The notes beneath the pieces were generated by a model, which was not told the origin of the DNA, ran no database searches, and saw nothing but the letters and a program-made list of their open reading frames with translations. Position numbers and translations under genes: made by a program. 64,000 nt of DNA, taken from sequence record PP438435.1. One strand, written 5' to 3'. Shown piece by piece: positions 10,547-30,626 of the stretch (positions are counted from its first letter, which is position 1; each line of letters starts with the position of its first letter).

Positions 10547-10560
10547 TGTTCTGCCTTACG

Positions 10561-10606
10561 CTAGGCGCCTAGGGGGCATGCTCGCGGCAAGATAGCCTAG
10601 TGTCAA
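10561..10606 (-). promoter_or_regulatory. Putative dnaB promoter region with CTAGGCGCCTAG(G) operator
   Basis: Palindrome core at 10561-10573 (13/14 match to CCTAGGCGCCTAGG); minus-strand TTGACA at 10606-10601 followed by a CTAGGC half-site. -10 element not clear. Confidence 0.6.
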
Positions 10607-11961
10607 GCCCCCACGGATGAGAATGCTCCGGTGTCCGCCGGCGGCGCCGGCATCGGAGGCTTGTCAGCGAGGGCAGCGTCCAGCGCGGCAGTGTTGGCGC
10701 TGAATGACTTCAGGTAGGACTCGTAATCCATTGCAGGTGGTGGTGCCCAACCCGTCTCGTCAAGATGAATCTCAAGCGCTCGGACCGCCTCACTGACGTG
10801 CGGCTGTGAGAGGCGCGAGCCAGCCGCGGTTTCAGCTTGCATGTGCGCCCGGATGCCACTGCTCTCGATCGACGCGACTCGGCGACCCACATCGTTGAGT
10901 GCGTAGTGCAAGCAGCGATCGATGGCCTTTACCCACAAGAAGTCGCTCGTGCTGACGATGCCGGTGTCCTGTGCGGCGCCCAGCAGGCGCGATAGCGAGC
11001 AGCGGATATGCGCGCTGGCGAAGTAGCAGGCCGCGAGTTGGCCTTCGGGGGATAGGGGATCATCGGCCACTCGCGCGCTGTCTAGGTACTCAGCCGCTCC
11101 CCTGTTGAAGCGTTTCAGCATCGAGTCGAGTAGCGCTTCCGCCTTCGGGTCGAGCCGGATTTCCCAGGGGCCGTTGGCTGGCCAGTCGGTGTAGAGCTTG
11201 CCCTTGAGCGTTCGGATCAGGCGCTCTCTGGCTGTCCACGCAGGCCCGAACCCCGCCGAGGCCGCATCCATGAGCTGATCCGCTGCTTTTTTGTCGCCAA
11301 GGATGCGCGCAGCGAAGATCGCGAGCAGTAGGTCCTCTGCGAATGTCCGCGGCTCCGTAGACGGTCGGCCAAGCTGCGCGCCGAAGGCGGCGCTGGCTGC
11401 ATCGGGCCGCCAGGTCGCGCGCGTGAGTTTCGGATCCCGCTTTGGCGTGAGCGCTTTGACGATGACCGCCCACTCGTAGGGCGGTAGGGGCCACCAGAAA
11501 TTGCCTCGCTCCTCGCGCTTGGTTTTTCCCTCAAGCCATAGCACGGGTCTGATACGCGGGAACACCTTTGCGTTGTGGCGCAGCAGGCCCTCGAAGTCGA
11601 GGCGCCTGCGGTAGCGCACCGCCGGCGCTCGACGCCAGATCCAGATCCCGGTCAGCACAAGTCCGATCGACGCCGGCAGAGCCAGGAACCGACCGCTCAT
11701 GCTGATGGCCTCGAACAGCGTGGATGCCGGCAGGTCCTCGGGGACAGGCCGCTTCAGGATGCGCACGAAGCGATTGAAGTCCCGGCGATAGCTCTCTGGG
11801 TACAGAGGCATGACGTGCTGCATGACCACCGCCTGCGCACGCATCGCTGTCCATGTCCGCTCGCGGATGGAGGATCCGAAAGCGACCCACAGTACGATCG
11901 CGAGTAGTGAAATCCCGATCACGGTGGGAGCGATGAAGTCAGGCTTCGGTGCGTCAGACAT
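10603..11961 (-). CDS. icmP: Type IVB coupling-complex protein DotM/IcmP (IncI TrbA-like)
   Basis: Two N-terminal TM segments; C-terminal GIVSTSDFLWVKAIDRCLHYALNDVGRRVASIESSGIRAHMQAE matches the IcmP signature. Confidence 0.88.
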   Translation of the reverse strand: MSDAPKPDFIAPTVIGISLLAIVLWVAFGSSIRERTWTAMRAQAVVMQHVMPLYPESYRRDFNRFVRILKRPVPEDLPASTLFEAISMSGRFLALPASIGLVLTGIWIWRRAPAVRYRRRLDFEGLLRHNAKVFPRIRPVLWLEGKTKREERGNFWWPLPPYEWAVIVKALTPKRDPKLTRATWRPDAASAAFGAQLGRPSTEPRTFAEDLLLAIFAARILGDKKAADQLMDAASAGFGPAWTARERLIRTLKGKLYTDWPANGPWEIRLDPKAEALLDSMLKRFNRGAAEYLDSARVADDPLSPEGQLAACYFASAHIRCSLSRLLGAAQDTGIVSTSDFLWVKAIDRCLHYALNDVGRRVASIESSGIRAHMQAETAAGSRLSQPHVSEAVRALEIHLDETGWAPPPAMDYESYLKSFSANTAALDAALADKPPMPAPPADTGAFSSVGA

Positions 11962-11988
11962 CGGTGCACTCCGCGAGGCGGCGCTGGT

Positions 11989-12690
11989 TCAGGTCGAGGC
12001 GACGGGCGCGGGCGTGCGCCGGCGTGCCAGCTTCTTGGCGATGGTTCCGCGCTTGAGCTTGGCTTCGCTTTGCTTCGCGACGCGCGCTGGCTGAAAGCGG
12101 AAGCGGCTCCGCAGTAGTTCATGGTCATAGCCGCGTGCGATGGCCTCCTGCACGACGTTGTCCATGAACATCTGCAGCACGCGTTTTCGCTGGGATACGG
12201 GCGTGGAGTTGAGCTTGAGCCAGTACAGGAGCATCAAGCGTTCCACTTCCAGCCGCATCGATGAGCCCTCACTCCTTCCGATCCACTTGTAGCCGGCGGT
12301 GCCGTCACGCCCCAGAAGCACAGCGAGGTGCCGGGCTGTGAAGGTCTCGTCGATGTCCTTGCAGAGATCGAACAGCTCTTTGGCTGTTGGAGCTCTCGGG
12401 ATGGGGAGGACGTCGCGGTCTTCGGACAGCACTCGCAGCATGACCGCTTGCGTGATCGACGGGCGCTGCTTGTCCAGGCTGCCCGCGCTCGGCAGCGCGT
12501 TGTTCTTTTTGAGCGCGTAGTACGCCTGCGGCATGAGCCCCAGGAGATACATCATGTCCGGAGCGCGCAAGCCAAATGCGCGCTCCATCACCTGGAAATC
12601 GGAGCCTCGCACGGGGCGATCTTTGGGTATCACGCGTTCGTCCTCTAGGAAAGGAGCACCGGTGGGGTGCAAGATTGATGTGCGAGCCAA
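11989..12690 (-). CDS. Putative DNA-binding protein with two HTH-like segments
   Basis: ERAFGLRAPDMMYLLGL and TARHLAVLLGRDGTAGYKWIG look like HTH units; basic C-tail; TTG start; co-oriented with icmP. Confidence 0.5.
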   Translation of the reverse strand: MARTSILHPTGAPFLEDERVIPKDRPVRGSDFQVMERAFGLRAPDMMYLLGLMPQAYYALKKNNALPSAGSLDKQRPSITQAVMLRVLSEDRDVLPIPRAPTAKELFDLCKDIDETFTARHLAVLLGRDGTAGYKWIGRSEGSSMRLEVERLMLLYWLKLNSTPVSQRKRVLQMFMDNVVQEAIARGYDHELLRSRFRFQPARVAKQSEAKLKRGTIAKKLARRRTPAPVAST

Positions 12691-12733
12691 GTATAGTGTA
12701 TGCGAAACCCCACATCAGAGGCCTGGAGGCCCC

Positions 12734-13534
12734 ATGAACTCACCCATCAACATGGAAGATCCGTTTGCCCGCCACCCCTTGGGCGGGCAAGGGGGGCGGA
12801 CGGTACGCAGCGTGGTCCGCGGCGTGATCACCGCGGATCCGAGGGACGACGCGCCGCCGGCGAAAACGGTGCTGCTGGATCACGTCACCCTTGATCCTTC
12901 CGTTCTCACCCGTCCCGTGCATGGCGTCAGCTTCTTCTTCGGGAAGTCGGATCTTCACATCCTGCTCGAGGCCGCCTTCCATGCAGCCCAGGCCCAGGAG
13001 CGCGTGGCCTACGAAGTGGAGGTGGCCGTCGACATCACGGCTATCAAGCAGGTTGGCGGCTTGCGCGCCGATGACCTGATCGCCGAGTCACTGCGCGCAC
13101 CCGCCAACCGACAGCACTACGTCATCTATCTGAACCGCATGTCGGAGTCCGGCAGTGAGTACCTCGAACAGCTGTTCGCGGACGAGATCGCCGAGTTGCG
13201 CGACCCCGACACTGGTGAGCTGGATGAAGAGGTGAGGGAGTGGCGCTTCCCCAAGATCATCGCGCGCTACCCGCACCTGCTGGACGTCATGGCAGCTCAC
13301 CCGGCCTTCGCGCACGTGATCATGTTCGTATGGGAGTGCGCCGCACCCGCGCCGGCTGGCGGTGTCGTCGAGGGCGCCAAGATCGCGACGCTGTATCACC
13401 CTGGCCGCGTGCTCGAAGTGGAAACCATTGGCGCGGACTTCATTCGCGCGGTCTTGCCCGTGATCGGCGACAGTATCGAAGTCCAGCAAGCGCTTGAGGC
13501 GAAAGGGATTCACGTCGCGGCCGCCGGGATGTGA
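12734..13534 (+). CDS. Hypothetical protein
   Basis: GGAGG RBS before ATG 12734; strongly GC3-biased codons. Confidence 0.7.
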   Translation: MNSPINMEDPFARHPLGGQGGRTVRSVVRGVITADPRDDAPPAKTVLLDHVTLDPSVLTRPVHGVSFFFGKSDLHILLEAAFHAAQAQERVAYEVEVAVDITAIKQVGGLRADDLIAESLRAPANRQHYVIYLNRMSESGSEYLEQLFADEIAELRDPDTGELDEEVREWRFPKIIARYPHLLDVMAAHPAFAHVIMFVWECAAPAPAGGVVEGAKIATLYHPGRVLEVETIGADFIRAVLPVIGDSIEVQQALEAKGIHVAAAGM

Positions 13535-13543
13535 CGCGTGCGC

Positions 13544-13572
13544 TTGCCTGCGTAGCGTTAGCGCACTATAGT
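13544..13572 (+). promoter_or_regulatory. Sigma70-type promoter of the transfer operon
   Basis: TTGCCT-17 bp-TATAGT upstream of GTG 13603. Confidence 0.6.
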
Positions 13573-13602
13573 CTCATCACGACAACGCCTCAGGGGTGGT
13601 AG

Positions 13603-14154
13603 GTGAAACGCATAGTTCTGGGCGCCCGCCGTGTCATCTCTGGGCTTCGCGATCGTCGAAACGCACGCGTCCGCCTGCTGGCGCGTAGCGATGGCGGCAG
13701 CGTCGCGCTGTCGCGGTTGGCTGCGACGCTGCGTCCCGGTACGGCCGGGGGCGTCAGTGTCGAGTACCGCGTGGGCGACGCTGAATCCGCTGGCATCCCG
13801 CTGCTCACGCGCTCCGCTGGCGCAGAAGAGTGGTCGGTGGTCACGCACTTCCCGACCGAGGGCAGGGCAGCGAAGGCGCTTTGCGACCTTGTTCTGCCAC
13901 CCCCGGCTTTCCGTCTCAACTGGCGTGCGGCTGCAGCCACGGCCGCAGTCGTAGCGGCCGTTTTACTGCTGACGCCGGCACCCACTCCCCCGGTCCTGTC
14001 GACCGCCCAGGCGGGAGGCGCAGCCGCACGCCCGTTGAACCTGTCTGCGCCGCTGGACATGCCGCGGCCGTCGATTCAGGCGCCCCCGTTGGCCAGTCCC
14101 GGCGATGAGGGACTGGTCGTCGACATGGAGGAGCTGCTGTCATGCGATCCCTGA
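13603..14154 (+). CDS. Hypothetical membrane-anchored protein, first gene of the transfer operon
   Basis: Central hydrophobic segment AAAATAAVVAAVLLLTP and Pro-rich tail; overlaps next gene. Confidence 0.55.
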   Translation: MKRIVLGARRVISGLRDRRNARVRLLARSDGGSVALSRLAATLRPGTAGGVSVEYRVGDAESAGIPLLTRSAGAEEWSVVTHFPTEGRAAKALCDLVLPPPAFRLNWRAAAATAAVVAAVLLLTPAPTPPVLSTAQAGGAAARPLNLSAPLDMPRPSIQAPPLASPGDEGLVVDMEELLSCDP

Positions 14155-14588
14155 CGCGCATATCGCTGGTCCTGCTGTTGCTGCTCACGAGTCCGTTGGC
14201 AGGGGCCCAGGCGACGCCGTCCTTCTACGTGAAGGTTGACCAGCACTGGTACGCAGTCACGTCGGGTGACGTGGCCATCGACGCAGGCGGGAACCTGGTC
14301 GACATCATTGGCACGGTGCTGCAGACAAGCTGCCGGCGAAGCTCTGGCGCTGTCCCAGCGCTTGGCACGCACAGTGCACTGCTGGGCAACCAGATTTTTG
14401 ACGTCCTGTATGCCAACGACGCCATCCGCCTGCACGCAACGACGCCGCCGGTTGTCGAGATTCGGCCTCCCACGGGTGATGTGTCCTGTGGGGCCGGCGT
14501 CACGCCCCCTCAGCCGATTGTCGATGCTGTTGCAAACCCCCCGGCACCCGGCTTGCAGCCTCTCTTCGCCAACGGTTTCGAGTCTTAA
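14142..14588 (+). CDS. Small secreted protein with C-terminal PLFANGFES motif
   Basis: Signal peptide MRSLTRISLVLLLLLTSPLAGA; two Cys; Pro-rich linker; FxxGFE end. Confidence 0.75.
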   Translation: MRSLTRISLVLLLLLTSPLAGAQATPSFYVKVDQHWYAVTSGDVAIDAGGNLVDIIGTVLQTSCRRSSGAVPALGTHSALLGNQIFDVLYANDAIRLHATTPPVVEIRPPTGDVSCGAGVTPPQPIVDAVANPPAPGLQPLFANGFES

Positions 14589-14591
14589 TCC

Positions 14592-15272
14592 ATGCTCTCA
14601 AAACGCCCTCAAGCACCTGGTGCACAGCAGCCAGCTTCCATGGTGCGCGGCACCGGTCAGCGCGAAACTGTTGCGCTGTCTATCGACTGGCTTCAGGAGC
14701 GGCTGACGTTCGCGCTGCGCGCGAATGCAGCGCTCGCTTTGTGCCTCTTGGTCTCCATCGGCATCAATGTCACGCAGTTTCTCACTGAGCCTGAGCCAGC
14801 GTACTTCGCGGTTGATGATCGCGGGCAAGTGATCAAGCTGACTCCTGTGGACCAGCCATTACTGTCGAACGACGCTCTCGCCCAGTGGGCGAGCGAGACT
14901 GCACGGAAGGCCTACAACCTCAACTTCGTTGACAACGAGCAGCAACTCTCCGTGCTGCGTGATCGCTTTTCGCCGGGCGCGTACAGCGAGTTCCTGAAGC
15001 AGATGGAGCAGAGCGTTTTGCCGCAGGTGAAATCTCAGCGGCTGATCGTGGAAGCCATCGCTGAACCGGCCACGATTCAGCGCAGTGGCTTGAACACCAA
15101 CGGGCACTTCTTGTGGCAGGTGGAAGTGCCCGTGTCCGTGACCTCACATTTCGGTGCCGGCCAGAGCCGTACGCAGCGTTACAAGGTCTCCCTCACCATC
15201 CAGCGTGTCGACAACCGGTTTCGCCCTGAGTCGGGTGTCGTCGTCACGCAGTTCATTTCTCGCCTCGCGTAG
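14592..15272 (+). CDS. icmL: DotI/IcmL (TraM-like) T4BSS protein
   Basis: TM helix then YFAVDDRGQVIKLTPVDQP, LNFVDNEQQL...F...Y..F, WQVEVPV, GVVVTQFI. Confidence 0.9.
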   Translation: MLSKRPQAPGAQQPASMVRGTGQRETVALSIDWLQERLTFALRANAALALCLLVSIGINVTQFLTEPEPAYFAVDDRGQVIKLTPVDQPLLSNDALAQWASETARKAYNLNFVDNEQQLSVLRDRFSPGAYSEFLKQMEQSVLPQVKSQRLIVEAIAEPATIQRSGLNTNGHFLWQVEVPVSVTSHFGAGQSRTQRYKVSLTIQRVDNRFRPESGVVVTQFISRLA

Positions 15273-15281
15273 GGGTCTCCG

Positions 15282-16283
15282 ATGCTGATCCGTCGCTTTA
15301 TTGGTCATGTGTTGATGGCCCTGCCCATCGTCGCGTGCGCTGCTTCCGCCACTGCCCAGGATGCGGTGCCCATGCCCGCGCCCGAGGTCGCCCAGGCTGA
15401 AGCAGCGCCCCCCGTCGAAACGCCGCCTGTGACGGCTTCGCAGGACACAGCAGGCGCTGCTTGGCTGGAGGCGCTGCAGACGCAGTATCCACTCTCGCCG
15501 GGCCAGGTGAAGGAGCTGAGGGCTCGGGATTCCGCGGTGTCCGAAGCGGCAATGTCACGCCCGACGCCTGCGGCAGCGCGCAGCGACATCATCTCGGTGA
15601 GCTTGGAGCCTGGCGCGTCCTCGCCCGTGATCGAGCTGTTGCACGGTTTCGCGACGAGCATTGAGGTGCTCGATGCGACTGGCCAGCCATGGCCCGTGTC
15701 GGTCCCTACGATTGGTGACGCTGAGGCTTTCAGCGTGAACGTCGTCGGAGCGTCGCTTTCCGAAGAGGTGGCGCAAGCCGGCGTGTCGACCCCAGCGGGT
15801 ATCGGGAGCGTCATCACGCTTGCTCCCCTTCGCAAGTTCGCTGCGACCAACCTGATCGTTGTTTTACAGAATCAATCGCGACCGATTAGCGTGGTCCTGA
15901 AGGCTGTCGAGCCCACAGCAACAACGGAGTTCCGTGATCGCGTCACGATCTCGGTGCAGGGCGTCGGGCCCTACGCAAAAAGCGTGTCGGCGAGGGGATA
16001 CGAACACCTGGATGCAGGCGAGGACCTGCGTTCCGCGCTGATCGGACGCCCGCCGCGTGGAGACGCCAAGGAGATTCTGGCGGCGGATCTCCCCGCTGGC
16101 CTGCGCGCATGGCGCGCGGGGAACACGCTCTGGATTCGGACGAATGCCACGTTGATCAGCCCCGCGCATGAAGCGAGTGTCGCTGGCGGTGCGCACCGTG
16201 CGTACCGACTCAGGTATCTGCCTGTCGTCGTAATGAGCGAAGCCGGCACGCTGAAGGAAATCAATCTCCAGGAGGCTCTGTGA
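15282..16283 (+). CDS. icmK: DotH/IcmK (TraN-like) T4BSS core protein
   Basis: Signal peptide; VSLEPGASSPVIELLHGFATSIEVLDATGQPWPV. Confidence 0.9.
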   Translation: MLIRRFIGHVLMALPIVACAASATAQDAVPMPAPEVAQAEAAPPVETPPVTASQDTAGAAWLEALQTQYPLSPGQVKELRARDSAVSEAAMSRPTPAAARSDIISVSLEPGASSPVIELLHGFATSIEVLDATGQPWPVSVPTIGDAEAFSVNVVGASLSEEVAQAGVSTPAGIGSVITLAPLRKFAATNLIVVLQNQSRPISVVLKAVEPTATTEFRDRVTISVQGVGPYAKSVSARGYEHLDAGEDLRSALIGRPPRGDAKEILAADLPAGLRAWRAGNTLWIRTNATLISPAHEASVAGGAHRAYRLRYLPVVVMSEAGTLKEINLQEAL

Positions 16284-17554
16284 CCAACTCGAATGTTCCG
16301 CCGGTAGAAGTGCCTGGCGTGACCCCTGAAGACGGCGGTCCGGTGATTCGTCGAGGGAAGAAGGGTGCAGCCAAGAGTCCGATGCGGCCCTTCATCATCA
16401 TGGGCGTCGCCGCACTCGTGATGGCAGGCGTGCTGGTCGTGTCCTGGATCCAGTCCATGAAGCCCCAGGTTCAGGAGTCGGCGCGCACCGCACCCGTCGC
16501 CGCGAACGTGGAGAATCCCGGGCTCTCGGCGACGGAGGATCCGACCCCCGCGTACCGCGAGATGGTTCTGGAAGAGAACCGGCGTGCCAGTGAGGCCGCT
16601 TTGAGTGGTGAAGGTGGTCGAGCCGTCGTGCCGCCGCTGCTTGGAGAGCGCAACGCTCCGCGGCAGCCGGACCCCGTCGTCACTTTCGATGATCCGCCGG
16701 CGCGTCAGCAGCCGGCTCGAACCACAGGCGGCGCCGTTGACCCCAAGAAGGTGTCCGCGCTCGTGGCTGAGAGTCGCCGCCTCCAGGCGCATTGGACGTC
16801 GCTGGGTCCGGCTGTCAGCACACAGGCTGCCCCGTTGCTGGTGCAGCGCGGGGCAGCTACTGACGCGGCTGCCGCTGCTGGCGGCGCGATCGGCGACGGG
16901 CCTCAAGTGCCTCTATTCGTTGTGCAGACCGCGGTCATGGAGACCGGCGCCAATTCGGACTATCCCGCACCGGTAGTGATGCGTTTGACCGGTGGCCCCT
17001 TGCGCGGAGCCCGGATTGTCGGGGAGTTCCGCGCAAGCTCGACGCAAGGTGTCAGTGATCGTGTGCAGCTGCGCGTATCGAGGATCGAAGTCGACGGCGT
17101 GGTGTATCAGACCGATGGCTTGGCGGTCGACCCCGGCACCCGCATCCCCGCGATCGAGGGCGACATCAATCGCCATCTCGCGCGCAACATTCTGGCGCGC
17201 GGCAGCGTGGCGTTCTTGCTCGGCTATGCGGGTGGCATCACCAGCGGCGCTCGCACCAGCTTCTCCGCGGACGGTGGCTTCGTGACGTCTTCACTCCGTA
17301 CGGGTGACCTGTTCCGCGCAGAAGCATCGCGAGAGGCCGCGTCTGCGGCAAGCGAGATTCGTATCCGGCAGCCTACTGTCACGGTGCCGGCAGGGACCCC
17401 CGTGGGCGTTGTCTTCCTCGAAGGACTGAAGTCGGCGGAGACGTCCGGCGCCAGTTCACGCGGATATGTTGCCGGTGCTGCACCAGCACCTGATGCGGCC
17501 AGCAGAGACGCTACGGGCGGTCAGCTGGAGTTCTCGACGGGCGAGTTCGAGTAA
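16280..17554 (+). CDS. icmE: DotG/IcmE (TraO, VirB10-like) T4BSS protein
   Basis: N-terminal TM; AVMETGANSDYPAPVVMRLTGGPLRGARIVGEF; TVTVPAGTPVGVVFL. Confidence 0.88.
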   Translation: MTNSNVPPVEVPGVTPEDGGPVIRRGKKGAAKSPMRPFIIMGVAALVMAGVLVVSWIQSMKPQVQESARTAPVAANVENPGLSATEDPTPAYREMVLEENRRASEAALSGEGGRAVVPPLLGERNAPRQPDPVVTFDDPPARQQPARTTGGAVDPKKVSALVAESRRLQAHWTSLGPAVSTQAAPLLVQRGAATDAAAAAGGAIGDGPQVPLFVVQTAVMETGANSDYPAPVVMRLTGGPLRGARIVGEFRASSTQGVSDRVQLRVSRIEVDGVVYQTDGLAVDPGTRIPAIEGDINRHLARNILARGSVAFLLGYAGGITSGARTSFSADGGFVTSSLRTGDLFRAEASREAASAASEIRIRQPTVTVPAGTPVGVVFLEGLKSAETSGASSRGYVAGAAPAPDAASRDATGGQLEFSTGEFE

Positions 17555-17557
17555 GCC

Positions 17558-18109
17558 ATGGGTCCGGAAGACAGCCTTCTTCTCTTCGCGAACCAGATGC
17601 CGCCCGTGCAGCGGGCGACGCTGGTGGTCGCGTACCTGATCGGCTTCGTAACGGCCGCCTCTGGCGTCTTCTATATGGCCTTCGGTGGCGGGCGTAACAG
17701 CCAGTACGGCCACGGCCTCGGCTATGGCTTCTCGATGGTCGTGGGTGGTGTCGCGATCATGAATCTCGCGCCTTTCATGACTGCTGTTGGGCTGTCATTC
17801 CTGGGTGCGCCCGTCATGGGCGCCGAGGGTGACGGGATCCTCGGGATGGGACAGATAGGCGGGTCAGGCGATGCCGCTTGGGTCGGCGCGATCTTCAACA
17901 TCCTCATCGCGATCGGGTGGATCTTTTCGCTCTGGGGTTTGATCAATTTGTCGCATGCGGGATCGCGTCGACAGAAGGGCATGGGCGCAGGCGTGTCGCG
18001 CATTGTCGCCGGCGTCGCGCTGGCCAATCCTTACGTGACCGCACAGATCCTGGGCGCGACGTTCGGCGTCTCGGACGTCGTCACTATCCTCGTTCCGCCA
18101 CCGCCGTAA
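17558..18109 (+). CDS. icmC: DotE/IcmC (TraQ-like) inner-membrane protein
   Basis: Four TM segments with VAYLIG and GWIFSLWGL...RIVAGVALAN pattern; expected position after icmE. Confidence 0.75.
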   Translation: MGPEDSLLLFANQMPPVQRATLVVAYLIGFVTAASGVFYMAFGGGRNSQYGHGLGYGFSMVVGGVAIMNLAPFMTAVGLSFLGAPVMGAEGDGILGMGQIGGSGDAAWVGAIFNILIAIGWIFSLWGLINLSHAGSRRQKGMGAGVSRIVAGVALANPYVTAQILGATFGVSDVVTILVPPPP

Positions 18110-18161
18110 GGGGCCTGCGGTCGGAGCACATCTGTTTAGGCCCTCACATGGAGTACGTGCA

Positions 18162-18530
18162 ATGAAAACTGTGAAATCCCTGGTGGCGAGCATCAAGACC
18201 TATGGCCTTGGTGCGGTCATTTTCGCGGCCGCGATGTCGCAGGCGTCGGCGCAGCGTGACGTCGCGGATATTGCGCAGTCGGTGGATGAAACTGGCGGCG
18301 CTCTCGGCTCGGCTGCGTGGACGATGATTGCGCTCGTGGGTTTCGTGACCACGGGCGTCGGTGTGTTCAAGATGATCAAGGCCAAGGAGAACCGCGAAGG
18401 CATGGGTATGGGCCTGGGCATGACCATTGGCGGCGCGGTCATGGCGGCCCTGCCGTTCCTGATCGGTGCGTTCAGCCAGACCGGCTTCGGCGAAGGCGCC
18501 TCCGGCCTCGATCGCATCAACGTCGACTGA
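18162..18530 (+). CDS. icmD: DotP/IcmD (TraR-like) pilin-like protein
   Basis: Signal-like N-terminus, two hydrophobic helices separated by FKMIKAKENRE; follows icmC; high-expression codon usage. Confidence 0.72.
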   Translation: MKTVKSLVASIKTYGLGAVIFAAAMSQASAQRDVADIAQSVDETGGALGSAAWTMIALVGFVTTGVGVFKMIKAKENREGMGMGLGMTIGGAVMAALPFLIGAFSQTGFGEGASGLDRINVD

Positions 18531-18533
18531 GCA

Positions 18534-19937: not shown

Positions 19938-19940
19938 CGG

Positions 19941-22900: not shown

Positions 22901-23015
22901 GATCGACACGCTCATCAAGGAACTGATGGATCTCTACGATCGCCAGATGGGCCAGCACGACGCGCTCGATCTGGTGGACCCGGCTGTGGCCGCCATGGAA
23001 CAGGAAGCACACTGA
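19941..23015 (+). CDS. icmB: DotO/IcmB (TraU, VirB4-like) ATPase
   Basis: 1024 aa; Walker A APMGAGKS, Walker B LDELH, IFWPSL, FIREGRK...VTLASQ, LTLSPTEMWAYNT. Confidence 0.93.
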   Translation: MLGLIDRGLRALDLNFWWILRSLGLNAPSFCSLDSVDGTHCLVTTSSDLVSVLELGGTRHTVTDANFDAVMRTLALKLSAHFAGTLAHRLQVVFVRDNGIEALDRELTEVLSPSLSAARTLGLQVEDLLSTRAVKLAEHCALERAYLVVTTTPQAMSTMDRRAATGELNKIKREIPAAPDALRPVPGLPGLMESHRSLLEALRNDFLHLGYHATLLKAGDALRVIRLQVDPEWTDPSWTASIPGDGKPIARRARAPEAGASPEDASAIFWPSLARQLIPRGAEPLSSQVLKIGDRLYQGVSMSLGPSQLEPFSALFDRLNETHIPYRLSFRISGAGVDDLEISLRRIAAMFSTSRTVKNALKEAVDDRADGLKRVGFQLDACTWVHTSDGVQDRMALSRAASRLARTIQGWGGCEVEERQGSPVTAVFSTVPGLLDRGAGTLSVPPVEDAVALLPFSRPASPWTAGSLILRTPCGKIYPHEPSRQVQTALVNLVYAPMGAGKSFLLNAMNTGLVLSPGQEQLPYIRILDIGTSSSGHISLIREGLPQELRHLVVYRRLQNLVSDAINVCDTPIGMRYPLASQRSFISSFCCLLASSLEGHISPDVPSVINRAIDEAYRVKDSEEPNRYDRGVDLDVDAALDQLNITPDDRTTWWEVTDELFARGSVVNAVRAQRYAVPTLGDVAAATSSERVKSVFRAEEGDAICGYTFRLLTDALREYPIISRQTRFDLGAARIVSLDLQEVTPKGGSAAERQTAIMYLLGMYVLTNEFSITEENVDAAKMPPAYREHHLRVAKRIKSIPKRIVLDELHRAMAAGPLVSGTIENFIREGRKDNVEVTLASQQLEDFSKTMVSLATSIWILGSGAQSRDETMERFKLGPEVVPILERIGKPSAKGSRFLGVFDTRNGRYVHELMLTLSPTEMWAYNTNAEDREVRDGLYARIGGAAARFVLAKAFPEGSAFSEIDRRKAALARAGRAASEEAATRNVIDTLIKELMDLYDRQMGQHDALDLVDPAVAAMEQEAH

Positions 23016-23023
23016 GGAGAGTC

Positions 23024-23521
23024 ATGATGCAGACGCAAATGCGGACGAAGTGGGCGCTCGCACTGGGGGCCCTGTTGGTTGGAGCCCTGGCTGATGTGGC
23101 GAGCGCGCAGCGCACCGTCACGCTCACCAATGCGAATCCTCCGCTGGTGATCCCGATCACTGCAGCGCCGGTCGAGCTCAACAACAAGGTGGTCACGATT
23201 CCGTGCGCCGTGAACGCACAAGGGGCGTGCCCGATCGGCGGCTCCTCGACGCCGCCGGCATTGAGCTTCAGTTGCTCTGGTTGTGCGACCGCCCGTGTTG
23301 GCCAAGCCGTGTCATTGACCTGGACCAGTACGCCGACGGAGGTCTGCTTCGCGGGGGGCACCGGCCCGGCCGCGACCAGCTGGACGGGTCTGCAGAACAC
23401 GAGTGGAACCGGTCGTTCGCTGTTGTTCACGGCAGCAGGGAGCTACTCCCTCACCCTGAAGTGCTACGGGGGCTCTGGTGCGACGGAGTTGCGTACGGTT
23501 GCCGCTGCCGTCAGCAGTTGA
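23024..23521 (+). CDS. Secreted Cys-containing Ig/PKD-like protein
   Basis: Signal peptide KWALALGALLVGALADVASA; GSYSLTLKCYG beta-strand pattern; RBS AGGAG. Confidence 0.65.
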   Translation: MMQTQMRTKWALALGALLVGALADVASAQRTVTLTNANPPLVIPITAAPVELNNKVVTIPCAVNAQGACPIGGSSTPPALSFSCSGCATARVGQAVSLTWTSTPTEVCFAGGTGPAATSWTGLQNTSGTGRSLLFTAAGSYSLTLKCYGGSGATELRTVAAAVSS

Positions 23522-23566
23522 TCGGCGGCACGTGCTGCCGGAGACACCTGACCAGCTCAGGGATCG

Positions 23567-23595
23567 TTGACACCTAGGCGCCTAGGGGTTAGGCT
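23567..23595 (+). promoter_or_regulatory. Sigma70 promoter with CCTAGGCGCCTAGG operator in the spacer
   Basis: TTGACA (23567-72), 17-bp spacer, TAGGCT (23590-95); perfect 14-bp palindrome at 23573-23586. Confidence 0.85.
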
Positions 23596-23630
23596 CGCCA
23601 CCGCGTGCATTAACACAGCAGGTGGCTACG

Positions 23631-24026
23631 ATGGCATTCACTGAACTCCTGAGCGAGTACCTGGACCTCCGCGCCGAGGAGCGCTCGGAGGGAACGACCT
23701 TCCCCCGCGGGCAAGCGCTTCGCGAGCGGATGCAGGCCATCGGCGAAGCGATGGACGCCCTCGTGGCAGGCGTGGCGGCGCTCGCACACTTTCCTGCGTC
23801 AGCGTTCGATGCCGGCGAAGGCGTTCAGATCGTCCGCGTGGCGCAGCGGACCGGTGAGGATCTCTGGGCCGTGCGCAGCGCTGGGGAGGTCTTGTCTCGA
23901 TTCGGCGAGTGGGCGCCAGAGCCCTCGCCCAGCAGGCGGACAGCGGCATGGATCGCTGACCACCGATTCGCGAGCGCAACGGCTGCAGCGCAGGCGCTTC
24001 ATGCGGCACGAGGGCGCTCGTCATGA
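23631..24026 (+). CDS. Hypothetical phage/plasmid-type protein
   Basis: LWAVR..GEVL...GEW..EPSPSRR....DHRF motif; coupled to next gene (ATGA). Confidence 0.6.
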   Translation: MAFTELLSEYLDLRAEERSEGTTFPRGQALRERMQAIGEAMDALVAGVAALAHFPASAFDAGEGVQIVRVAQRTGEDLWAVRSAGEVLSRFGEWAPEPSPSRRTAAWIADHRFASATAAAQALHAARGRSS

Positions 24027-24592
24027 GCGAGCACGCGCAAGCATCGTATGACCTCGTGGCGCACCTTGTGCGCCAGCAGGCGTGGTCGCGGAAGACGTTC
24101 GGGCCCGGCGACCGCGCGGCGGCCATCCTTGATCACATCCGCAAGGAGCTTGCCGAAGTCGCGGCAAACCCCCGTTCCGTGGAGGAGTGGATCGACATTG
24201 CAATGCTGGCGCTCGATGGCGCTTGGCGATCCGGCGCCTCGACACAGGAAGTGGCCGAGGCACTGCGCTGGAAACTCACCGTCAACGAGAGCCGCACGTG
24301 GCCCGATTGGCGCGCGGCGGAGCCAGGACGAGCGATCGAGCACGTGCGTGAGGGCGCTCCCGCCAGCGAGCTCGCTGTGTTCACGGCGACCTGGTGGTCG
24401 AGCGTCGCATGGGCGAATCAGGAAATCGACGTGTTGGCTCCGAACGAAGCGGCGGTGCGGGCCCTTGTGGATCGCGAGTGCCCCGCCGAGTTCAGGGGGC
24501 AGCCCTACTGCAAGGAGTCGACGGACTCCCTCAAGATCACGCGCGGCGACGCAGTGGCGTTGCCCTATGTCATCCGACAGCGCGATATGTAA
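24023..24592 (+). CDS. DUF550-family dATP/dGTP pyrophosphohydrolase (MazG-like) with C-terminal extension
   Basis: QQAWSRKTFGPG...ILDHIRKELAEV....EEWIDIAMLALDGAWR...KLTVNESRTWPDW...AIEHVR. Confidence 0.85.
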   Translation: MSEHAQASYDLVAHLVRQQAWSRKTFGPGDRAAAILDHIRKELAEVAANPRSVEEWIDIAMLALDGAWRSGASTQEVAEALRWKLTVNESRTWPDWRAAEPGRAIEHVREGAPASELAVFTATWWSSVAWANQEIDVLAPNEAAVRALVDRECPAEFRGQPYCKESTDSLKITRGDAVALPYVIRQRDM

Positions 24593-24620
24593 CTCGACCC
24601 GGGACATCAGGAGAGGCCCC

Positions 24621-25223
24621 ATGGAGTTTGGCATCGGCGGTAGTGCTAAGGCTGGTGGCGCCGGCTATCGCGTCGTAGAGGAGCCGGGCATCAAGATTGT
24701 GTTCGGGTCCGTGCCACTGGGTGAGTTTGCTCAGCTGCTGTCCGGAGCCCCAGACACCTGGCGGCTCGATCCGGGCCTGGGCCAGCTGCTCGGGGCGAAC
24801 CTCGCAGCCGGGACACCGGAAGCGCTCGCGGCCTACCGGCGCCGTGCGGCGCCAGGGCCGCGGCGTTGCGCGGAGGTATCAGCAGCGCTGTCGGCGGGTC
24901 TCAGCGCCGGCGCGATCGCGTGGGTGCTGAACGGCGACCGGGGAGAGAGTTCGGATGCGTTGTTCCAAGCGTGTGTGAGCGTACCGGTGCTTCAGGGGGC
25001 CGCTCGATCGGCTCCCAGGGATGGCGCGGACTTCAACCGCTGCGCGTTGCTCCAGGAGGCGGTTTACGAGTGCGCAGACGTGGGCGCGGCTGCGGCCATC
25101 TCTCCGCAGTGGGCTAAGCTCGTTGCTGCGTGGGATGCACTTCTCGCGGAGCGAGAGGCGGATCTCGGCGAGGGCAGCGCGTGGCAGCGGACGACAGCGG
25201 CTTTGAGGGCGCTCGGGGCTTGA
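24621..25223 (+). CDS. Hypothetical phage-type protein (W..NG..GESS...PRDGADFNRC motif)
   Basis: RBS AGGAG before ATG 24621; the longer ORF-track call from 24048 overlaps the DUF550 gene. Confidence 0.65.
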   Translation: MEFGIGGSAKAGGAGYRVVEEPGIKIVFGSVPLGEFAQLLSGAPDTWRLDPGLGQLLGANLAAGTPEALAAYRRRAAPGPRRCAEVSAALSAGLSAGAIAWVLNGDRGESSDALFQACVSVPVLQGAARSAPRDGADFNRCALLQEAVYECADVGAAAAISPQWAKLVAAWDALLAEREADLGEGSAWQRTTAALRALGA

Positions 25224-25248
25224 CACCTAGGCGCCTAGGCGTAAAGCT
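25220..25248 (+). promoter_or_regulatory. Sigma70 promoter with CCTAGGCGCCTAGG operator in the spacer
   Basis: TTGACA (25220-25), palindrome 25226-25239, weak -10 (TAAAGC/AAAGCT near 25242-48). Confidence 0.75.
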
Positions 25249-25282
25249 GACGCTGTGCATCGAGCACGCATTGGAGATGGAG

Positions 25283-25477
25283 ATGCTGACGTACACGATC
25301 CAGTTCGAGGGCAGGGCGGGGCATGCGGCCGTTCGTGCGGCTGTCCAGGGTGTTTGCGCCGTGTTGGCGTCAGTGCGGGACGACGGGGTTGCAGTCGTGC
25401 GCGTGCCAGAGGCCGCGGCCGAGGCGTTTGAGGGGGCTCTGGATAGCGCTGAGGGTGTCGCCGGTTACGCAGTGTAG
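25283..25477 (+). CDS. Small hypothetical protein
   Basis: GGAG RBS; first gene after the 25220 promoter. Confidence 0.5.
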   Translation: MLTYTIQFEGRAGHAAVRAAVQGVCAVLASVRDDGVAVVRVPEAAAEAFEGALDSAEGVAGYAV

Positions 25478-25543
25478 TCGGACCCGTTGAGGCGTTTCGC
25501 CGCTCATGAAGGGCGGCCACCGCACGCAGCAAGAGGAATCTGC

Positions 25544-25789
25544 ATGTCGAATCCAGGAAGTCTTCTGGCACTGATGGTGCTGGCGATCGCCGGCTTTATC
25601 GGAGCCCTATCGCTCAGCGGCATTGAGCCCGTGATCAGTGACCGCGAATTGGAGAGCATGCTACTGAACACGTCGCCGTGCGTCCGATACGAACTCTCGC
25701 GCGAGCAAGCGCCTTTGACCTATCGAGTTGTGGACCGAGTGAAGGCGTCGTGCATGTTCACGCCCGAGCGCGTGAGCGCGCACCCATGA
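25544..25789 (+). CDS. Small membrane-anchored protein (PCVR...KA.C), paralogue of 26575..26997
   Basis: N-terminal TM helix; SPCVRYEL...PL...KASC. Confidence 0.6.
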   Translation: MSNPGSLLALMVLAIAGFIGALSLSGIEPVISDRELESMLLNTSPCVRYELSREQAPLTYRVVDRVKASCMFTPERVSAHP

Positions 25790-26056
25790 ACGCAGCGGGC
25801 GTTCGGTCGGAGGCGGGTGCTGTGAACCTCCCGATCGCGTGGAGCGACCAATCGCCGGAGCTGCGCGAGCGCTGTGCCGGTGTCGTCCGAGACCGCACTG
25901 CGCTGTCCGGTGAAGGGGGAGCGCGAATGCACGCTCGTGAGCGTGTCACGAGTGGCCTACCGCTACCGTCGCCGTGGAGCGCAATCGCGCTGTGACAACC
26001 GCTATTGCAGCCTGGCATCGAAGCCGTGGCCGATAACGACCCGATGGAGGACCACG

Positions 26057-26578
26057 ATGTTTAATGACCCTGCGCTGATCGAGCGTTTGCAGGCCGCAAA
26101 GGATCGCATGTACGTGATCGTGGTCGCCGGCGGGACTACCCTACTGTGGGTAGGGCTTAGCCTTTACATCGTCTGGATGCGCCCCGGCGTTTTTCCCGCT
26201 TGGGCGACATGGTGGTGCGCTGTCGGCATCGCGGCTGCGGCCATCTTCGAGCTCGTGGCAGATGGCTTCTTGAAGGACGAGAGGAAGCGCCTGGCACTTC
26301 GCAATCGCGCCGTTCGGCATCACATCAAGGAGATCACTCTACTCTGGTGCGTAGCGAGCATCAGCGCGATCTTCGCCATAGTCATCGCCGCCGTCGCTGA
26401 GGTGGCGGAAAAAGCGGGCAGTCTGGATGCGCAAGTACGCCCGATCGCCACGATTGCGGGGTACGGGTTCAGTATCGTGGCTGTTGCAGCGTTCGCCAGC
26501 GCGGTGTCCCTCATCTTCAAGAGGCCAGGGTCAGAGCCCGGGGCAGGCGATGGTGGCAGTGCCGGGGGGAAGGCATGA
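26057..26578 (+). CDS. Four-TM membrane protein
   Basis: GGAGG RBS; four hydrophobic segments. Confidence 0.65.
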   Translation: MFNDPALIERLQAAKDRMYVIVVAGGTTLLWVGLSLYIVWMRPGVFPAWATWWCAVGIAAAAIFELVADGFLKDERKRLALRNRAVRHHIKEITLLWCVASISAIFAIVIAAVAEVAEKAGSLDAQVRPIATIAGYGFSIVAVAAFASAVSLIFKRPGSEPGAGDGGSAGGKA

Positions 26579-26997
26579 GTAACGACAACCGCGCGTTTGC
26601 AATCATCGGTGCCTGCGTCGTTGCTTTCTCGCTCGGCGTCTGGGGCGCGCACACGTATGTGACCGATGGTGGAGAGGCGGCCGCAGGCGTGCAGCCCGCG
26701 CATCGGAACCCAGAGGGGGGCGCATCTGGGGAAGCAGCGAGTGATCTCGATCCAGCGATCGAGGCGCCGCCGCGCACGCGGGGGGACGCTACGCTGGAGC
26801 GGGAGCTCACAGCGGACGAGCTCGCTGACGTCACGCCATGCGTGAGGGATCGGTTGCGACGAGCGCTCTCGGGAGTTGATGCTAATCCGCTGCGCGTTGT
26901 AGATCTCGCGGTCGCGAAGGCCGCATGCCGGTTGGAAGAGAGAGCGGATGCGCAAAGGGCCGCGCTCGGCGTGAGCGATTCCAGTATCGCGGAGTGA
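26575..26997 (+). CDS. Membrane-anchored protein (PCVR...KA.C), paralogue of 25544..25789
   Basis: N-terminal TM; TPCVRDRL...NPL...KAAC. Confidence 0.65.
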   Translation: MSNDNRAFAIIGACVVAFSLGVWGAHTYVTDGGEAAAGVQPAHRNPEGGASGEAASDLDPAIEAPPRTRGDATLERELTADELADVTPCVRDRLRRALSGVDANPLRVVDLAVAKAACRLEERADAQRAALGVSDSSIAE

Positions 26998-27006
26998 TAG
27001 CCGCGA

Positions 27007-27036
27007 GCCCCGCCCGTCCAACGACACGGGCGGGGC
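27007..27036. repeat. Inverted repeat (11-bp stem)
   Basis: GCCCCGCCCGT / ACGGGCGGGGC with 8-nt loop. Confidence 0.85.
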
Positions 27037-27045
27037 GGACCTAGG

Positions 27046-27090
27046 ACGAACGAATCCCAGCAGGCGTAGCGTGCTGGGATTCGTTCGTTT
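27046..27090 (+). terminator. 17-bp perfect stem-loop, possible terminator
   Basis: ACGAACGAATCCCAGCA / TGCTGGGATTCGTTCGT with 9-nt loop and only a short T run. Confidence 0.55.
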
Positions 27091-27143
27091 GGAGCCCCGA
27101 TGTTGGCATGTGACATGCTGACATGGTCTGCGCAGCTAGGTGC

Positions 27144-27172
27144 TTGACACTAGAACCCTAGGCGCCTAGGCT
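27144..27172 (+). promoter_or_regulatory. Sigma70 promoter with CCTAGGCGCCTAGG operator overlapping -10
   Basis: TTGACA (27144-49), 17 bp, TAGGCT (27167-72); palindrome 27157-27170. Confidence 0.85.
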
Positions 27173-27253
27173 CTGCTCCAAGCAGATGACTTGGAGGCCC
27201 CCGCATGAGCGTTCGCAGCGACCAACCGATCCCTTGCTGTGGGGTGCACCCTC

Positions 27254-28855: not shown

Positions 28856-28905
28856 ACAGCCGTTCGTCGGCATTGCTATCAATTCGCAGCGTGGAGGGTG
28901 CAGCC

Positions 28906-29421: not shown

Positions 29422-29463
29422 CGCATGCCCGCTTCCGCGGGCGCGGAATCAAGGAGAACGACG

Positions 29464-30558: not shown

Positions 30559-30626
30559 CTCCTGAGTAGACGGGTGGCGATGAAGTCACTGCGTTTTGTG
30601 CTGCGTTGATCAGAGAGGAGGAATAC

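Follow-up and report, generated by a model that had tools for sequence, protein, structure and literature searches.

A 14-bp palindrome embedded in twelve promoters of a conjugative plasmid recorded as a phage is best read as the operator of a global repressor regulon

Results

Genes and promoters at the locus

The stretch of DNA analyzed here (the window) comprises 64,000 nucleotides of record PP438435.1. On its minus strand, a gene for the replicative helicase DnaB (9137..10546; Pfam DnaB_C, E=1e-104; DnaB, E=3e-32) follows a gene for a DotM-like type IVB secretion protein (10603..11961; Pfam DotM_C, E=3e-31). The dnaB promoter (10578..10606, minus strand) consists of TTGACA at 10606-10601, a 17-bp spacer and GAGCAT at 10583-10578; the DotM-like gene terminates within this -35, at the TGA 10603-05. 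Starting 4 bp (GCCC) downstream of the -10 lies the first copy (10560..10573, no strand assigned) of a 14-bp palindrome, CCTAGGCGCCTAGG, with the core CTAGGCGCCTAG; this copy matches at 13 of 14 positions and reads CCTAGGCGCCTAGC on the minus strand. Behind it dnaB forms a single-gene unit. The DotM-like gene is outside the regulon described below, its stop codon overlapping the dnaB -35.

The other three copies are perfect and precede operons on the plus strand. In the second promoter (23567..23595), TTGACA at 23567-72 is followed directly by the palindrome at 23573-23586, GGT and TAGGCT at 23590-95, with a 17-bp spacer between the two hexamers; the operon behind it (23631..25223) encodes a 131-aa protein, a PF04447 dATP/dGTP pyrophosphohydrolase (formerly DUF550) and a 200-aa protein. 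In the third (25220..25248), TTGACA at 25220-25 takes in the TGA that ends the preceding gene (25221-23) and is followed by the palindrome at 25226-25239 and by a -10 that can be read as TAAAGC or AAAGCT, with a spacer of 16 or 17 bp. Its operon (25283..26997, the start at 25283 being taken from a relative's gene call) encodes five small proteins without Pfam matches; a simple scan of hydropathy marked hydrophobic segments in three of them, with four in one. The fourth promoter (27144..27172) carries TTGACA at 27144-49, 7 bp and the palindrome at 27157-27170, whose terminal TAGG together with CT makes up the -10 (TAGGCT, 27167-72) after a 17-bp spacer. Here, the operon (27205..31115) encodes a C5 cytosine methylase, a 171-aa protein, a DUF5131 protein (29464-30558) and a 162-aa protein; an 18-codon upstream ORF (27205-27261) overlaps the methylase ATG at 27254, and the methylase gene ends at 28855.

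These four copies were the only matches in the window with two or fewer mismatches, compared with 0.17 expected from shuffled sequences, and none of 100 shuffles reached four. A preliminary description of this DNA had proposed the four positions, a TTGACA-17 bp promoter geometry and the presence of two TGA stops inside TTGACA. The window search returned the same positions, and the geometry and the stops held base by base, with the spacer at 25220 being 16 or 17 bp. The controlled genes it had named were also recovered: Pfam recognized DnaB, the PF04447/DUF550 hydrolase, the C5 methylase and the DUF5131 protein, and the hydropathy scan agreed with its membrane-protein cluster.

Distribution and specificity of the palindrome

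A scan of the whole replicon (208,985 bp; 226 proteins), again with up to two mismatches, detected 12 sites, all in annotated gaps. Against crude gene calls (coding at least 83%), they again lay outside coding sequence, save that two of them ran into a call, by 1 and 5 bases. The palindrome also ranked first among the over-represented 12-mers and 14-mers of the replicon. Of the element-specific regulon of four promoters proposed earlier, the promoter-embedded operators were supported and the number was not. The 12 promoters are scattered over 10-172 kb of the plasmid (~160 kb), so the regulon extends beyond one leading-region block, and "leading region" does not describe sites dispersed in this way round the plasmid. 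As anticipated in the preliminary description, CTAG is depleted (109 observed vs. ~680 expected from base composition); the replicon has 25 CCTAGG hexamers, 17 of which fall within operators. Across 26 sites in four plasmids, the 12-bp core was nearly invariant and its central CG invariant, the outermost C/G being the least conserved position.

The motif was also searched for in 185,579 representative genomes (one per species, Xanthomonadales included), JGI metagenome contigs and IMG/VR. Linked to a promoter, it was essentially absent from the genomes and the JGI contigs: TTGACA-linked palindromes gave only three matches in the 185,579 genomes, and the bare 14-mer yielded only single matches in IMG/VR, none of these matches being related to the present plasmid. 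The earlier view that this is not a general genomic motif was upheld in all three collections.

Promoter geometry

Measured from a TTGACA-like -35, the palindrome falls into three registers, which together account for 11 of the 12 sites. In class A, represented by four sites on PP438435.1 including 23573 and 25226, the palindrome fills the -35/-10 spacer; in class B, exemplified by 27157, it overlaps the -10, its TAGG contributing the hexamer's T and A; and in class C, to which the dnaB copy belongs, it lies just 3' of the -10, at the transcription start. Of the 26 sites in four plasmids, 24 had a -35-to-palindrome distance of 0-2, 7-8 or 26-28 bp; the other two, DFL 172000, which has no clear -35 and is ambiguous in orientation, and L039 18001, fell outside all three classes. 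All eight non-coding or stop-overlapping TTGACA hexamers on the replicon are operator-linked, the remaining 23 being intragenic, and seven of the nine replicon-wide matches to TTGACN-N16-18-TANNNT contain the palindrome.

Most of the 12 promoters have a consensus or near-consensus -35. Where a -35 could be recognized, at 11 promoters, the spacers measured 16-18 bp; those at perfect-TTGACA promoters were 17 bp, except for one of 16 or 17 and one of 18 bp. A strict sigma-70 scan called none of these promoters, because T1, A2 and T6 are the only positions of TATAAT that their -10 hexamers keep; the hexamers are weak by E. coli rules, which counts against the overall reading given below. A protein bound in any of the three registers would be incompatible with RNA polymerase on the same promoter. 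A short operator that overlaps the core promoter and recurs at several promoters of one conjugative plasmid, as found here, is a feature of plasmid global-repressor regulons such as those of KorA, ArdK and StbA.

The operator-controlled operons hold replication, DNA-modification and accessory genes. Their products include DnaB, two C5 methylases, an adenine methylase, DUF5131, the dNTP pyrophosphohydrolase, an RNase T-like exonuclease, an AbiEii toxin, membrane proteins and many unknowns. No palindrome lies directly upstream of the secretion and pilus genes of PP438435.1.

Conservation in related plasmids

The comparison set comprised four related plasmids, with DnaB 64-82% identical to that of PP438435.1. 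At orthologous promoters, the -35, the palindrome and the T/A/T positions of the -10 were kept, while the flanks had diverged. The dnaB operator was retained in all four relatives, in each of which the DotM-dnaB synteny is also found, and in the five-plasmid alignment of this promoter the -35, an xAxxxT -10 and the operator stood out as conserved islands. The second promoter has orthologues in three relatives (L033:8742, L039:15021 and L040:15008), as has its operon in relatives, and the third (L033:10409 and L039:16818) and fourth (L033:11901 and L039:21312) have orthologues in two. Further, genes found only in a relative (a 971-aa gene; DUF6904 with PAPS reductase) carry their own promoter-operator copy.

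Nature of the replicon

PP438435.1 is labelled in GenBank as a Dolichospermum phage ("jumbo cyanophage"). Its genes, however, specify a Dot/Icm-type secretion system, a thin pilus, a relaxase, a coupling protein and ParB/parS. The families detected were DotM_C, DotH/IcmK, DotI/IcmL, TrbI/DotG-like, DotD, TraG-D_C and MobA/MobL, together with secretin/PilO/T2SSE/T2SSF, ParB and KfrA_N. The secretion core, coupling protein, relaxase, pilus and partition genes of a type IVB (Dot/Icm, IncI-like) plasmid are thus all present, and the earlier description of the DNA as a conjugative element stands despite the phage label. Neither Pfam nor PHROG returned a capsid, portal, terminase or tail match among the ~95 proteins scanned, the sole phage-like trace being a partial, weak terminase-like stretch in one protein (E=3e-7 over 80 residues); lacking virion genes among those proteins, a tailed-bacteriophage identity was rejected. 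Judged by its gene content, PP438435.1 is a conjugative plasmid mislabelled as a phage. The gene order of a relative spans the record ends, which implies that the replicon is circular. The nearest DnaB homologues belong to Xanthomonadales, a member of which is probably the host; the best PLSDB match of DotH was 31%.

A candidate regulator

The preliminary description had suggested the product of 11989..12690 as regulator. This protein showed no DNA-binding signature in Pfam or NCBIfam and was rejected, being a conserved secretion-cluster protein that adjoins DotM in all relatives. A better candidate lies outside the window, at record 103473-103799: a 108-aa Xre/434-type helix-turn-helix (HTH) protein, encoded by the last gene of the operon behind operator 102439. 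Its five-helix domain matched Pfam HTH_3 with a score that passes the curated threshold (E=1.8e-7), and its NCBIfam matches, RstR and DicA, fell below their cut-offs. Among solved structures, 434 repressor and P22 C2 came closest, through their DNA-binding domains (E=7e-5 to 6e-4). An orthologue with 76% identity, the predicted recognition helix kept, occurs in an operator-sharing relative; in L030, the 4 kb of contig upstream of the orthologue contain no operator, so conserved autoregulation is not evident. Apart from the query's own representative, no single-domain homologue above ~50% identity turned up in an exhaustive HMMER search. Several small family-less proteins are also encoded behind operators, and each could be the regulator; the 108-aa protein is the leading candidate for the predicted master repressor.

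Discussion

The best reading of these sites appears to be a KorA/ArdK-like global repressor regulon. From their geometry and conservation we infer repression: CCTAGGCGCCTAGG is probably the operator, placed in 12 promoter cores, of a dimeric sequence-specific repressor that would most likely be plasmid-encoded. Bound at any of the three operator positions, such a repressor would exclude RNA polymerase, and the promoters would be silent in an established host. Upon entry into a repressor-free recipient, they would fire briefly and be reset as the repressor builds up; since the candidate HTH operon sits behind operator 102439, negative autoregulation would follow. Zygotic induction of this kind is plausible by analogy with R388 and RP4 (PMC3937220, PMC7314908).

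A host-encoded regulator could instead bind the palindrome, the plasmid promoters being plugged into a host circuit, and the HTH orthologue is indeed confirmed in just one operator-sharing relative, the contigs of two more distant ones having been covered in part. We regard this as unlikely. The near-absence of the motif from genomes, with three unrelated matches among species that include Xanthomonadales, counts against a host regulon, which would leave chromosomal copies, and known plasmid global regulons rely on plasmid-encoded repressors (PMC3937220, PMC2665229).

The concentration of CCTAGG hexamers within operators, and the two C5 methylases and one adenine methylase in operator-controlled operons, would also suit CCTAGG pairs acting as methylation targets or as controller-protein boxes like those of restriction-modification systems, with promoter activity set by the plasmid's C5 methylases. 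Controller proteins of such systems are likewise small Xre-type HTH proteins. Nevertheless, no restriction enzyme was noticed in the part of the proteome scanned, and the central CG, outside CCTAGG, is invariant as well; an invariant centre with variable ends is more in keeping with a 12-bp protein footprint than with a pair of 6-bp enzyme sites. The methylation explanation is improbable as a substitute for a repressor, with which methylation could coexist. By a similarly improbable extension, the operator would double as an epigenetic timer linking the length of the establishment burst to completed self-methylation: each operator copy carries two CCTAGG sites, the plasmid's cytosine methylases belong to the regulon, and the repressor's binding to new, unmodified DNA in the recipient may differ from its binding to the modified DNA of an established host. 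Likelier than the timer is that the ~35-bp promoter-operator unit is a portable cassette enrolling newly acquired cargo genes in the regulon, because extra operator copies precede relative-specific genes.

Binding of the 12 copies by the plasmid ParB, which would silence nearby promoters in partition-linked control, is very improbable. ParB (record 205905-206879) does have ParB_N, HTH_ParB and ParB_C domains, and about a dozen palindromes scattered over a conjugative plasmid recall RK2, which carries 12 KorB sites. KorB, moreover, acts as a repressor (PMC11790492). However, there are no CCTAGG palindromes within 30 kb of parB, and those present occupy fixed registers inside core promoters, neither upstream nor distant. 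Instead, a distinct, perfect 22-bp palindrome with GTTTCCACGTGGAAAC lies directly 5' of parB and is kept beside parB in a relative; we take it to resemble canonical parS closely, and this separate site in both plasmids led us to reject the CCTAGG palindrome as a ParB-binding site. Least probable of all, and rejected, is a MerR-kind activator that would bind the palindrome and remodel the promoter: the class A sites do lie in the spacer, where such activators bind, but MerR promoters have spacers of 19-20 bp, those here are 16-18 bp and already the optimal 17 bp at most perfect-TTGACA promoters, the palindrome also overlaps the -10 or sits downstream of it, and the scanned proteins included none of the MerR family.

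For the global repressor regulon, IncP Kor and IncW/IncN ArdK, close to the analogues named in the preliminary description (IncP Kor and IncN CUP/Ard), are the right comparison. RP4 KorA, a 101-aa dimeric protein, acts at seven promoters on a 12-bp palindrome (OA, consensus GTTTAGCTAAAC) that comes in a perfect and an imperfect class (PMC2665229). The plasmid described here shares the short palindrome at many promoters, the two classes and, provided that the candidate is right, an autoregulated operon encoding a small (~100 aa) dimeric HTH repressor (PMC2665229). In contrast, its motif is the 14-bp CCTAGGCGCCTAGG rather than GTTTAGCTAAAC, which rejects identity with the IncP-1 OA operator, the sites number 12 instead of seven, the Dot/Icm-type backbone is unrelated, and no second operator type was seen alongside the palindrome. 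In IncP-1 plasmids, KorA is encoded in a korA-incC-korB control operon. Here, Pfam and NCBIfam gave no KorA-family match among the candidate proteins scanned (part of the 226), and no korA-like gene was seen at parB, which adjoins the relaxase gene.

ArdK of R388 holds down five maintenance promoters, one of which is its own, and these strong repressed promoters overshoot after transfer (PMC3937220). The proposed likeness, one repressor on several strong maintenance or establishment promoters, its own among them, with a post-transfer burst (PMC3937220), is one of architecture rather than of any known sequence relationship. The controlled set here differs in including a replicative helicase and three methylases, and its sites extend over ~160 kb, whereas the ArdK set is clustered near the transfer origin. 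Related CUP/ArdK control is found in IncN pKM101. The N-terminal domain of the candidate is most similar to the DNA-binding domains of 434 repressor/Cro and P22 C2, and 434 repressor binds as a dimer to 14-bp near-palindromic operators that overlap promoter cores. Unlike these proteins, it has no cleavable C-terminal domain but a Pro-rich linker and two C-terminal helices predicted by a low-confidence model, and dispersed sites on a plasmid replace the tripartite operators of a temperate phage.

The palindrome circuit is thus most likely a known type of plasmid control in a new plasmid family. For this uncharacterised family of large Dot/Icm-type environmental plasmids, it provides a clear, testable regulatory map, in which one operator recurs at twelve promoters and a few proteins stand as repressor candidates. 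Relabelling PP438435.1 as a plasmid has consequences for phage databases and for claims of host range based on the record, and the rule that strong promoters are held by a global repressor would be extended from the small RK2 and R388 to a 209-kb plasmid.

Results

The palindrome marks promoters across the whole replicon

The window was searched for the 14-bp palindrome CCTAGGCGCCTAGG with up to two mismatches allowed, and the count was compared with that in 100 dinucleotide-preserving shuffles. Four matches were found, against a shuffle expectation of 0.17, and none of the 100 shuffles reached four. These were the copies of the preliminary description: perfect at 23573, 25226 and 27157 (sites are named by their start coordinate) and identical at 13 of 14 positions at 10560. 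Base-by-base inspection bore out the promoter geometry proposed for them, with TTGACA at 23567, 25220 and 27144 and, on the minus strand, at 10606-10601, and likewise the placement of two TGA stop codons within TTGACA hexamers. No gap separates the -35 from the palindrome at 23573 and 25226, while at 27157 the distance is 7 bp and the terminal TAGG, followed by CT, forms the -10 hexamer TAGGCT. The minus strand at 10560 reads TTGACA, 17 bp, GAGCAT, 4 bp and then the palindrome. Since a strict sigma-70 scan did not call the palindrome promoters of the window, our own pattern, TTGACN-N16-18-TANNNT, was used instead.

The regulon had been described as comprising four promoters. All four sites are present, but a motif scan of the full 208,985-bp record PP438435.1 raised the total to 12 sites at no more than two mismatches: six perfect (23573, 25226, 27157, 82592, 112500 and 172000), five with one mismatch (10560, 102439, 121016, 144339 and 166960) and one with two (100662). 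Rather than forming a single leading-region block, they are spread over 160 kb. All 12 fall in gaps of the deposited annotation, with site 25226 doing so only if the start of CDS 25181-25477 is moved to 25283. A crude gene call, in which coding was 83% or more, likewise left them non-coding, except that one site overlapped a gene by 1 base and another by 5. Further, the palindrome ranked first of all repeated 12-mers and 14-mers on the plasmid. Of the 31 TTGACA hexamers on the two strands, 23 are inside annotated genes; the remaining eight, either non-coding or overlapping a stop codon, are without exception linked to an operator. Similarly, the palindrome lies inside seven of the nine matches to TTGACN-N16-18-TANNNT. 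The depletion of CTAG was also confirmed, as both CTAG and CCTAGG are several-fold rarer elsewhere on the plasmid; 17 of the 25 CCTAGG hexamers of the replicon are within operators.

Three local features of the window were also recorded. The deposited start of CDS 25181-25477 overlaps both operator 25226 and the preceding gene, and comparison with the 64-aa gene of a relative suggests ATG 25283 as the likelier start. Two GC-rich hairpins at 27015-27100, between the operon behind operator 25226 and the promoter at 27157, probably serve as terminators that keep the two transcription units apart. Finally, an 18-codon upstream ORF (27205-27261) with a GGAGG ribosome-binding site ends in a TGA that overlaps the C5 methylase ATG at 27254 (ATGGCTGA); the same layout occurs in a related plasmid (contig L033), which suggests translational coupling or a leader peptide.

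Operator position favors repression

To describe promoter-operator geometry, 26 sites from four plasmids were oriented by their downstream gene. Their -35-to-palindrome distances fell into three classes, with two sites outside them. In class A (0-2 bp), the spacer is taken up by the operator, with a TAnnnT -10 approximately 3 bp beyond it; in class B (7-8 bp), the -10 begins with the operator's promoter-proximal TAGG (TAGGCT, TAGTAT, TAGGAT or TACGCT); and in class C (26-28 bp), found only at dnaB, the operator lies just past the -10. The two exceptions are site 18001 of the related contig L039, which is unclear, and site 172000, which lacks a clear -35 and lies between divergently oriented genes for a HipB-like protein and a membrane protein. 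Palindrome positions 2-13 are near-invariant (25 or 26 of 26 sites per position), and about 70% of the sites have C/G at the outer positions.

In all three classes, a bound protein would occupy the place where RNA polymerase must sit, which favors repression and counts against activation from an upstream position. Spacer remodeling of the MerR type is disfavored by spacers of 16-18 bp.

The operators are conserved in related plasmids

Relatives were found by protein searches with a 108-aa helix-turn-helix (HTH) protein (record 103473-103799), the DUF550 protein and DnaB, followed by contig look-ups; an IMG/VR search for related loci with the DotM-like protein returned nothing. The plasmids came from SRR845265 (DnaB 82% identical; L030, L033 and L034), ERR4007992 (77%; L035 and L039), SRR32675152 (67%; L036) and two JGI metagenomes (64%; L037, L038 and L040), and the DotM-dnaB junction and the secretion cluster are common to them all.

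In a five-way alignment of the dnaB promoter, the -35, an xAxxxT -10 and the operator stand out as conserved islands, while the remainder has diverged. The orthologues of sites 23573, 25226 and 27157 are all kept in SRR845265, at roughly 77-81% overall identity and with flanks that are little alike, and in ERR4007992. In the latter, the orthologue of 23573 belongs to class B, as opposed to class A here, a shift which suggests selection for an operator in the promoter and not for a fixed sequence block. Two relative-specific units, a 971-aa gene and a DUF6904-PAPS reductase pair, carry promoter-operator copies of their own. At the dnaB operator position in SRR32675152 (L036:1741-1752), the single copy available reads CTATGCGCATAA, a symmetric G-to-T and C-to-A core change (G5>T/C10>A) that may mark a shifted repressor specificity. 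Both sites seen in the JGI plasmid (3300032431) read CCTAAGCGCCTAGG.

Motif scans of representative genomes, metagenome contigs and IMG/VR yielded isolated, unrelated matches and no relatives, and thus serve as a specificity control. The promoter-linked motif matched three times among 185,579 species (one genome each) and six times in JGI metagenome contigs, and the bare 14-mer gave 14 single matches in IMG/VR, none of them related to this plasmid.

Genes behind the operators

Operator 10560 precedes dnaB. Behind operator 23573 lie a dATP/dGTP pyrophosphohydrolase and proteins of 131 and 200 aa without assigned function; behind 25226, five small proteins, three with hydrophobic segments; and behind 27157, the upstream ORF, the C5 methylase, a DUF5131 protein and two unknowns, one on either side of the latter. 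Outside the window, the sites precede genes for DUF6283 and DUF6384 proteins (82592), unknown proteins of 313 and 97 aa (100662), a 113-aa protein with two hydrophobic segments, an 84-aa unknown and the 108-aa HTH protein (102439), a run of small same-strand genes of assumed extent that includes DUF4031 (112500), a same-strand run with an RNase T-like exonuclease (121016), a same-strand run of about 18 kb, also of assumed extent, encoding another C5 methylase, an AbiEii toxin and a protein annotated as an adenine methylase (144339), and two unknowns (166960). Operator 172000 could serve either HipB-like/HipA or a four-segment membrane protein; the HipA kinase and its upstream HipB-like HTH gene occupy record positions 170171-171877 (L004:20171-21877), and 123 bp separate the operator from the HipB-like start downstream of it. 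PDB sequence searches with three small operator-linked proteins gave nothing meaningful.

No palindrome lies directly in front of the secretion or pilus genes. Replication, DNA modification and accessory cargo best sum up the controlled set, which extends over 160 kb.

The replicon is a Dot/Icm-type conjugative plasmid

The window matched PP438435.1, deposited as 'Dolichospermum phage Dfl-JY45', at 100% identity over the 21 kb compared (9000-30000), and the fetched record contains the whole window exactly, as its bases 1-64000. Despite this match, the phage identity was rejected on gene content. Pfam searches identified DotM-like (10603-11961), DotI/IcmL (14640-15272), DotH/IcmK (15282-16283), TrbI/DotG-like (16280-17554) and DotD (203165-203650) proteins, a TraG-D_C coupling-protein domain (180101-182665), a MobA/MobL relaxase (204386-205654) and, at 191-199 kb, a thin-pilus set of secretin, PilO, T2SSE ATPase and T2SSF, along with topoisomerase III (156002-158149), HipA (170171-171487), ParB (205905-206879), KfrA-like (113115-114122) and RdgC (114393-115304) proteins. 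Among the approximately 95 proteins scanned, no capsid, portal or tail match was found, and the sole virion-like trace was a weak terminase-like stretch of 80 residues. With a complete Dot/Icm-type conjugation system, maintenance genes and no virion genes among the proteins scanned, the element is therefore a Dot/Icm-type conjugative plasmid, in agreement with the conjugative element assumed at the outset.

Two large window proteins have no palindrome in front: one of 1832 aa (50977-56475) with an LPD1 polyvalent-protein domain, and one of 2214 aa (56649-63293) resembling DarB-like antirestriction methylase-helicases (PHROG 10089, E=0). Proteins of both kinds are typical of conjugative elements.

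The gene order of a relative crosses both ends of the record, indicating a circular replicon, and PP438435.1 has no terminal repeats. Its GC content is about 65%, and the closest chromosomal DnaB homologues are from Xanthomonadales/Lysobacterales (57-61% identity). Most likely, PP438435.1 is a conjugative plasmid whose host was a Xanthomonadales-like heterotroph present in the cyanobacterial culture. It is distant from everything in PLSDB, where megablast retrieved no close relatives, tblastn with DotH gave a best match of 31% and a search with the 108-aa HTH protein returned nothing useful. Segments 100% identical to it (L031 and L032) are present in assemblies of the unrelated runs DRR737448 and SRR6407889, so the plasmid or its host also occurs outside the published isolate. 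Neither the record nor the motif was the subject of any paper found in our literature search.

Candidate regulators

The best-placed candidate is the 108-aa HTH protein, whose gene is the last in the operon behind operator 102439. Among solved structures, it is closest to the DNA-binding domains of the 434 repressor and P22 C2; 434 operators are 14 bp long. SRR845265 carries the same operator and an orthologue that is 76% identical and keeps the predicted recognition helix save for one Ser/Thr change. When 1.8 billion representatives were searched exhaustively with HMMER, no single-domain homologue above about 50% identity appeared beyond the query's own representative; the protein is thus as lineage-restricted as the operator. 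On the other side, no operator lies in the 4 kb that contig L030 holds upstream of the orthologue, several small proteins without family matches likewise stand behind operators, and the single-sequence AlphaFold2 model was poor (pLDDT 49). We therefore regard it as the leading candidate, at somewhat less than an even chance.

It is one of four proteins with HTH_3-type domains. A 356-aa member is encoded between operators 100662 and 102439, and upstream of its gene lies the palindrome CCTACGG-TT-CCGTAGG (L029:6006-6021; record 101006-101021), whose half-sites resemble the CCTAGGC of the operator and which might constitute a second, related operator. The other two were set aside as antitoxin-like: a 107-aa protein (97630-97953) with a Y4mF/HipB-type family match below the curated cut-off, and a 117-aa protein (171524-171877) adjoining HipA.

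ParB is an unlikely regulator because no CCTAGG site occurs within 30 kb of parB and a separate parS-like palindrome lies upstream of the gene, both here and in a relative (L035:21139-21154). This element, CCGGTTTCCAC/GTGGAAACCGG, is a perfect 22-bp palindrome with a parS-like core between relaxase and parB (record 205749-205770; L005:5749-5770); it probably acts as the partition site, perhaps with the transfer origin close by. The protein originally suggested, 11989-12690, was discarded, as it matched no DNA-binding family and is a conserved neighbor of DotM among the secretion genes of every relative.

Discussion

The set of promoter palindromes is real and larger than first reported. In how it would work, with one palindrome at many promoters, the putative circuit is like KorA/OA of RP4, where a 101-aa dimeric HTH protein acts at a 12-bp palindrome in seven promoters with perfect and imperfect classes (PMC2665229). 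It is also like the ArdK regulon of R388, in which five maintenance promoters are repressed, ArdK's own included, and strong repressed promoters overshoot after transfer (PMC3937220). By sequence, the plasmid's circuit belongs to neither family: its operator differs and its backbone is unrelated, and no KorA-like protein was seen among the plasmid proteins scanned.

Zygotic induction, the reading first proposed and documented for RP4 genes (PMC7314908), would follow almost automatically if the repressor is plasmid-encoded. The phage label of PP438435.1 is wrong and, together with the annotated start of CDS 25181-25477, merits the attention of curators. Global-repressor regulons are a known kind of plasmid circuit, and the operator set of this plasmid is best regarded as a new example.
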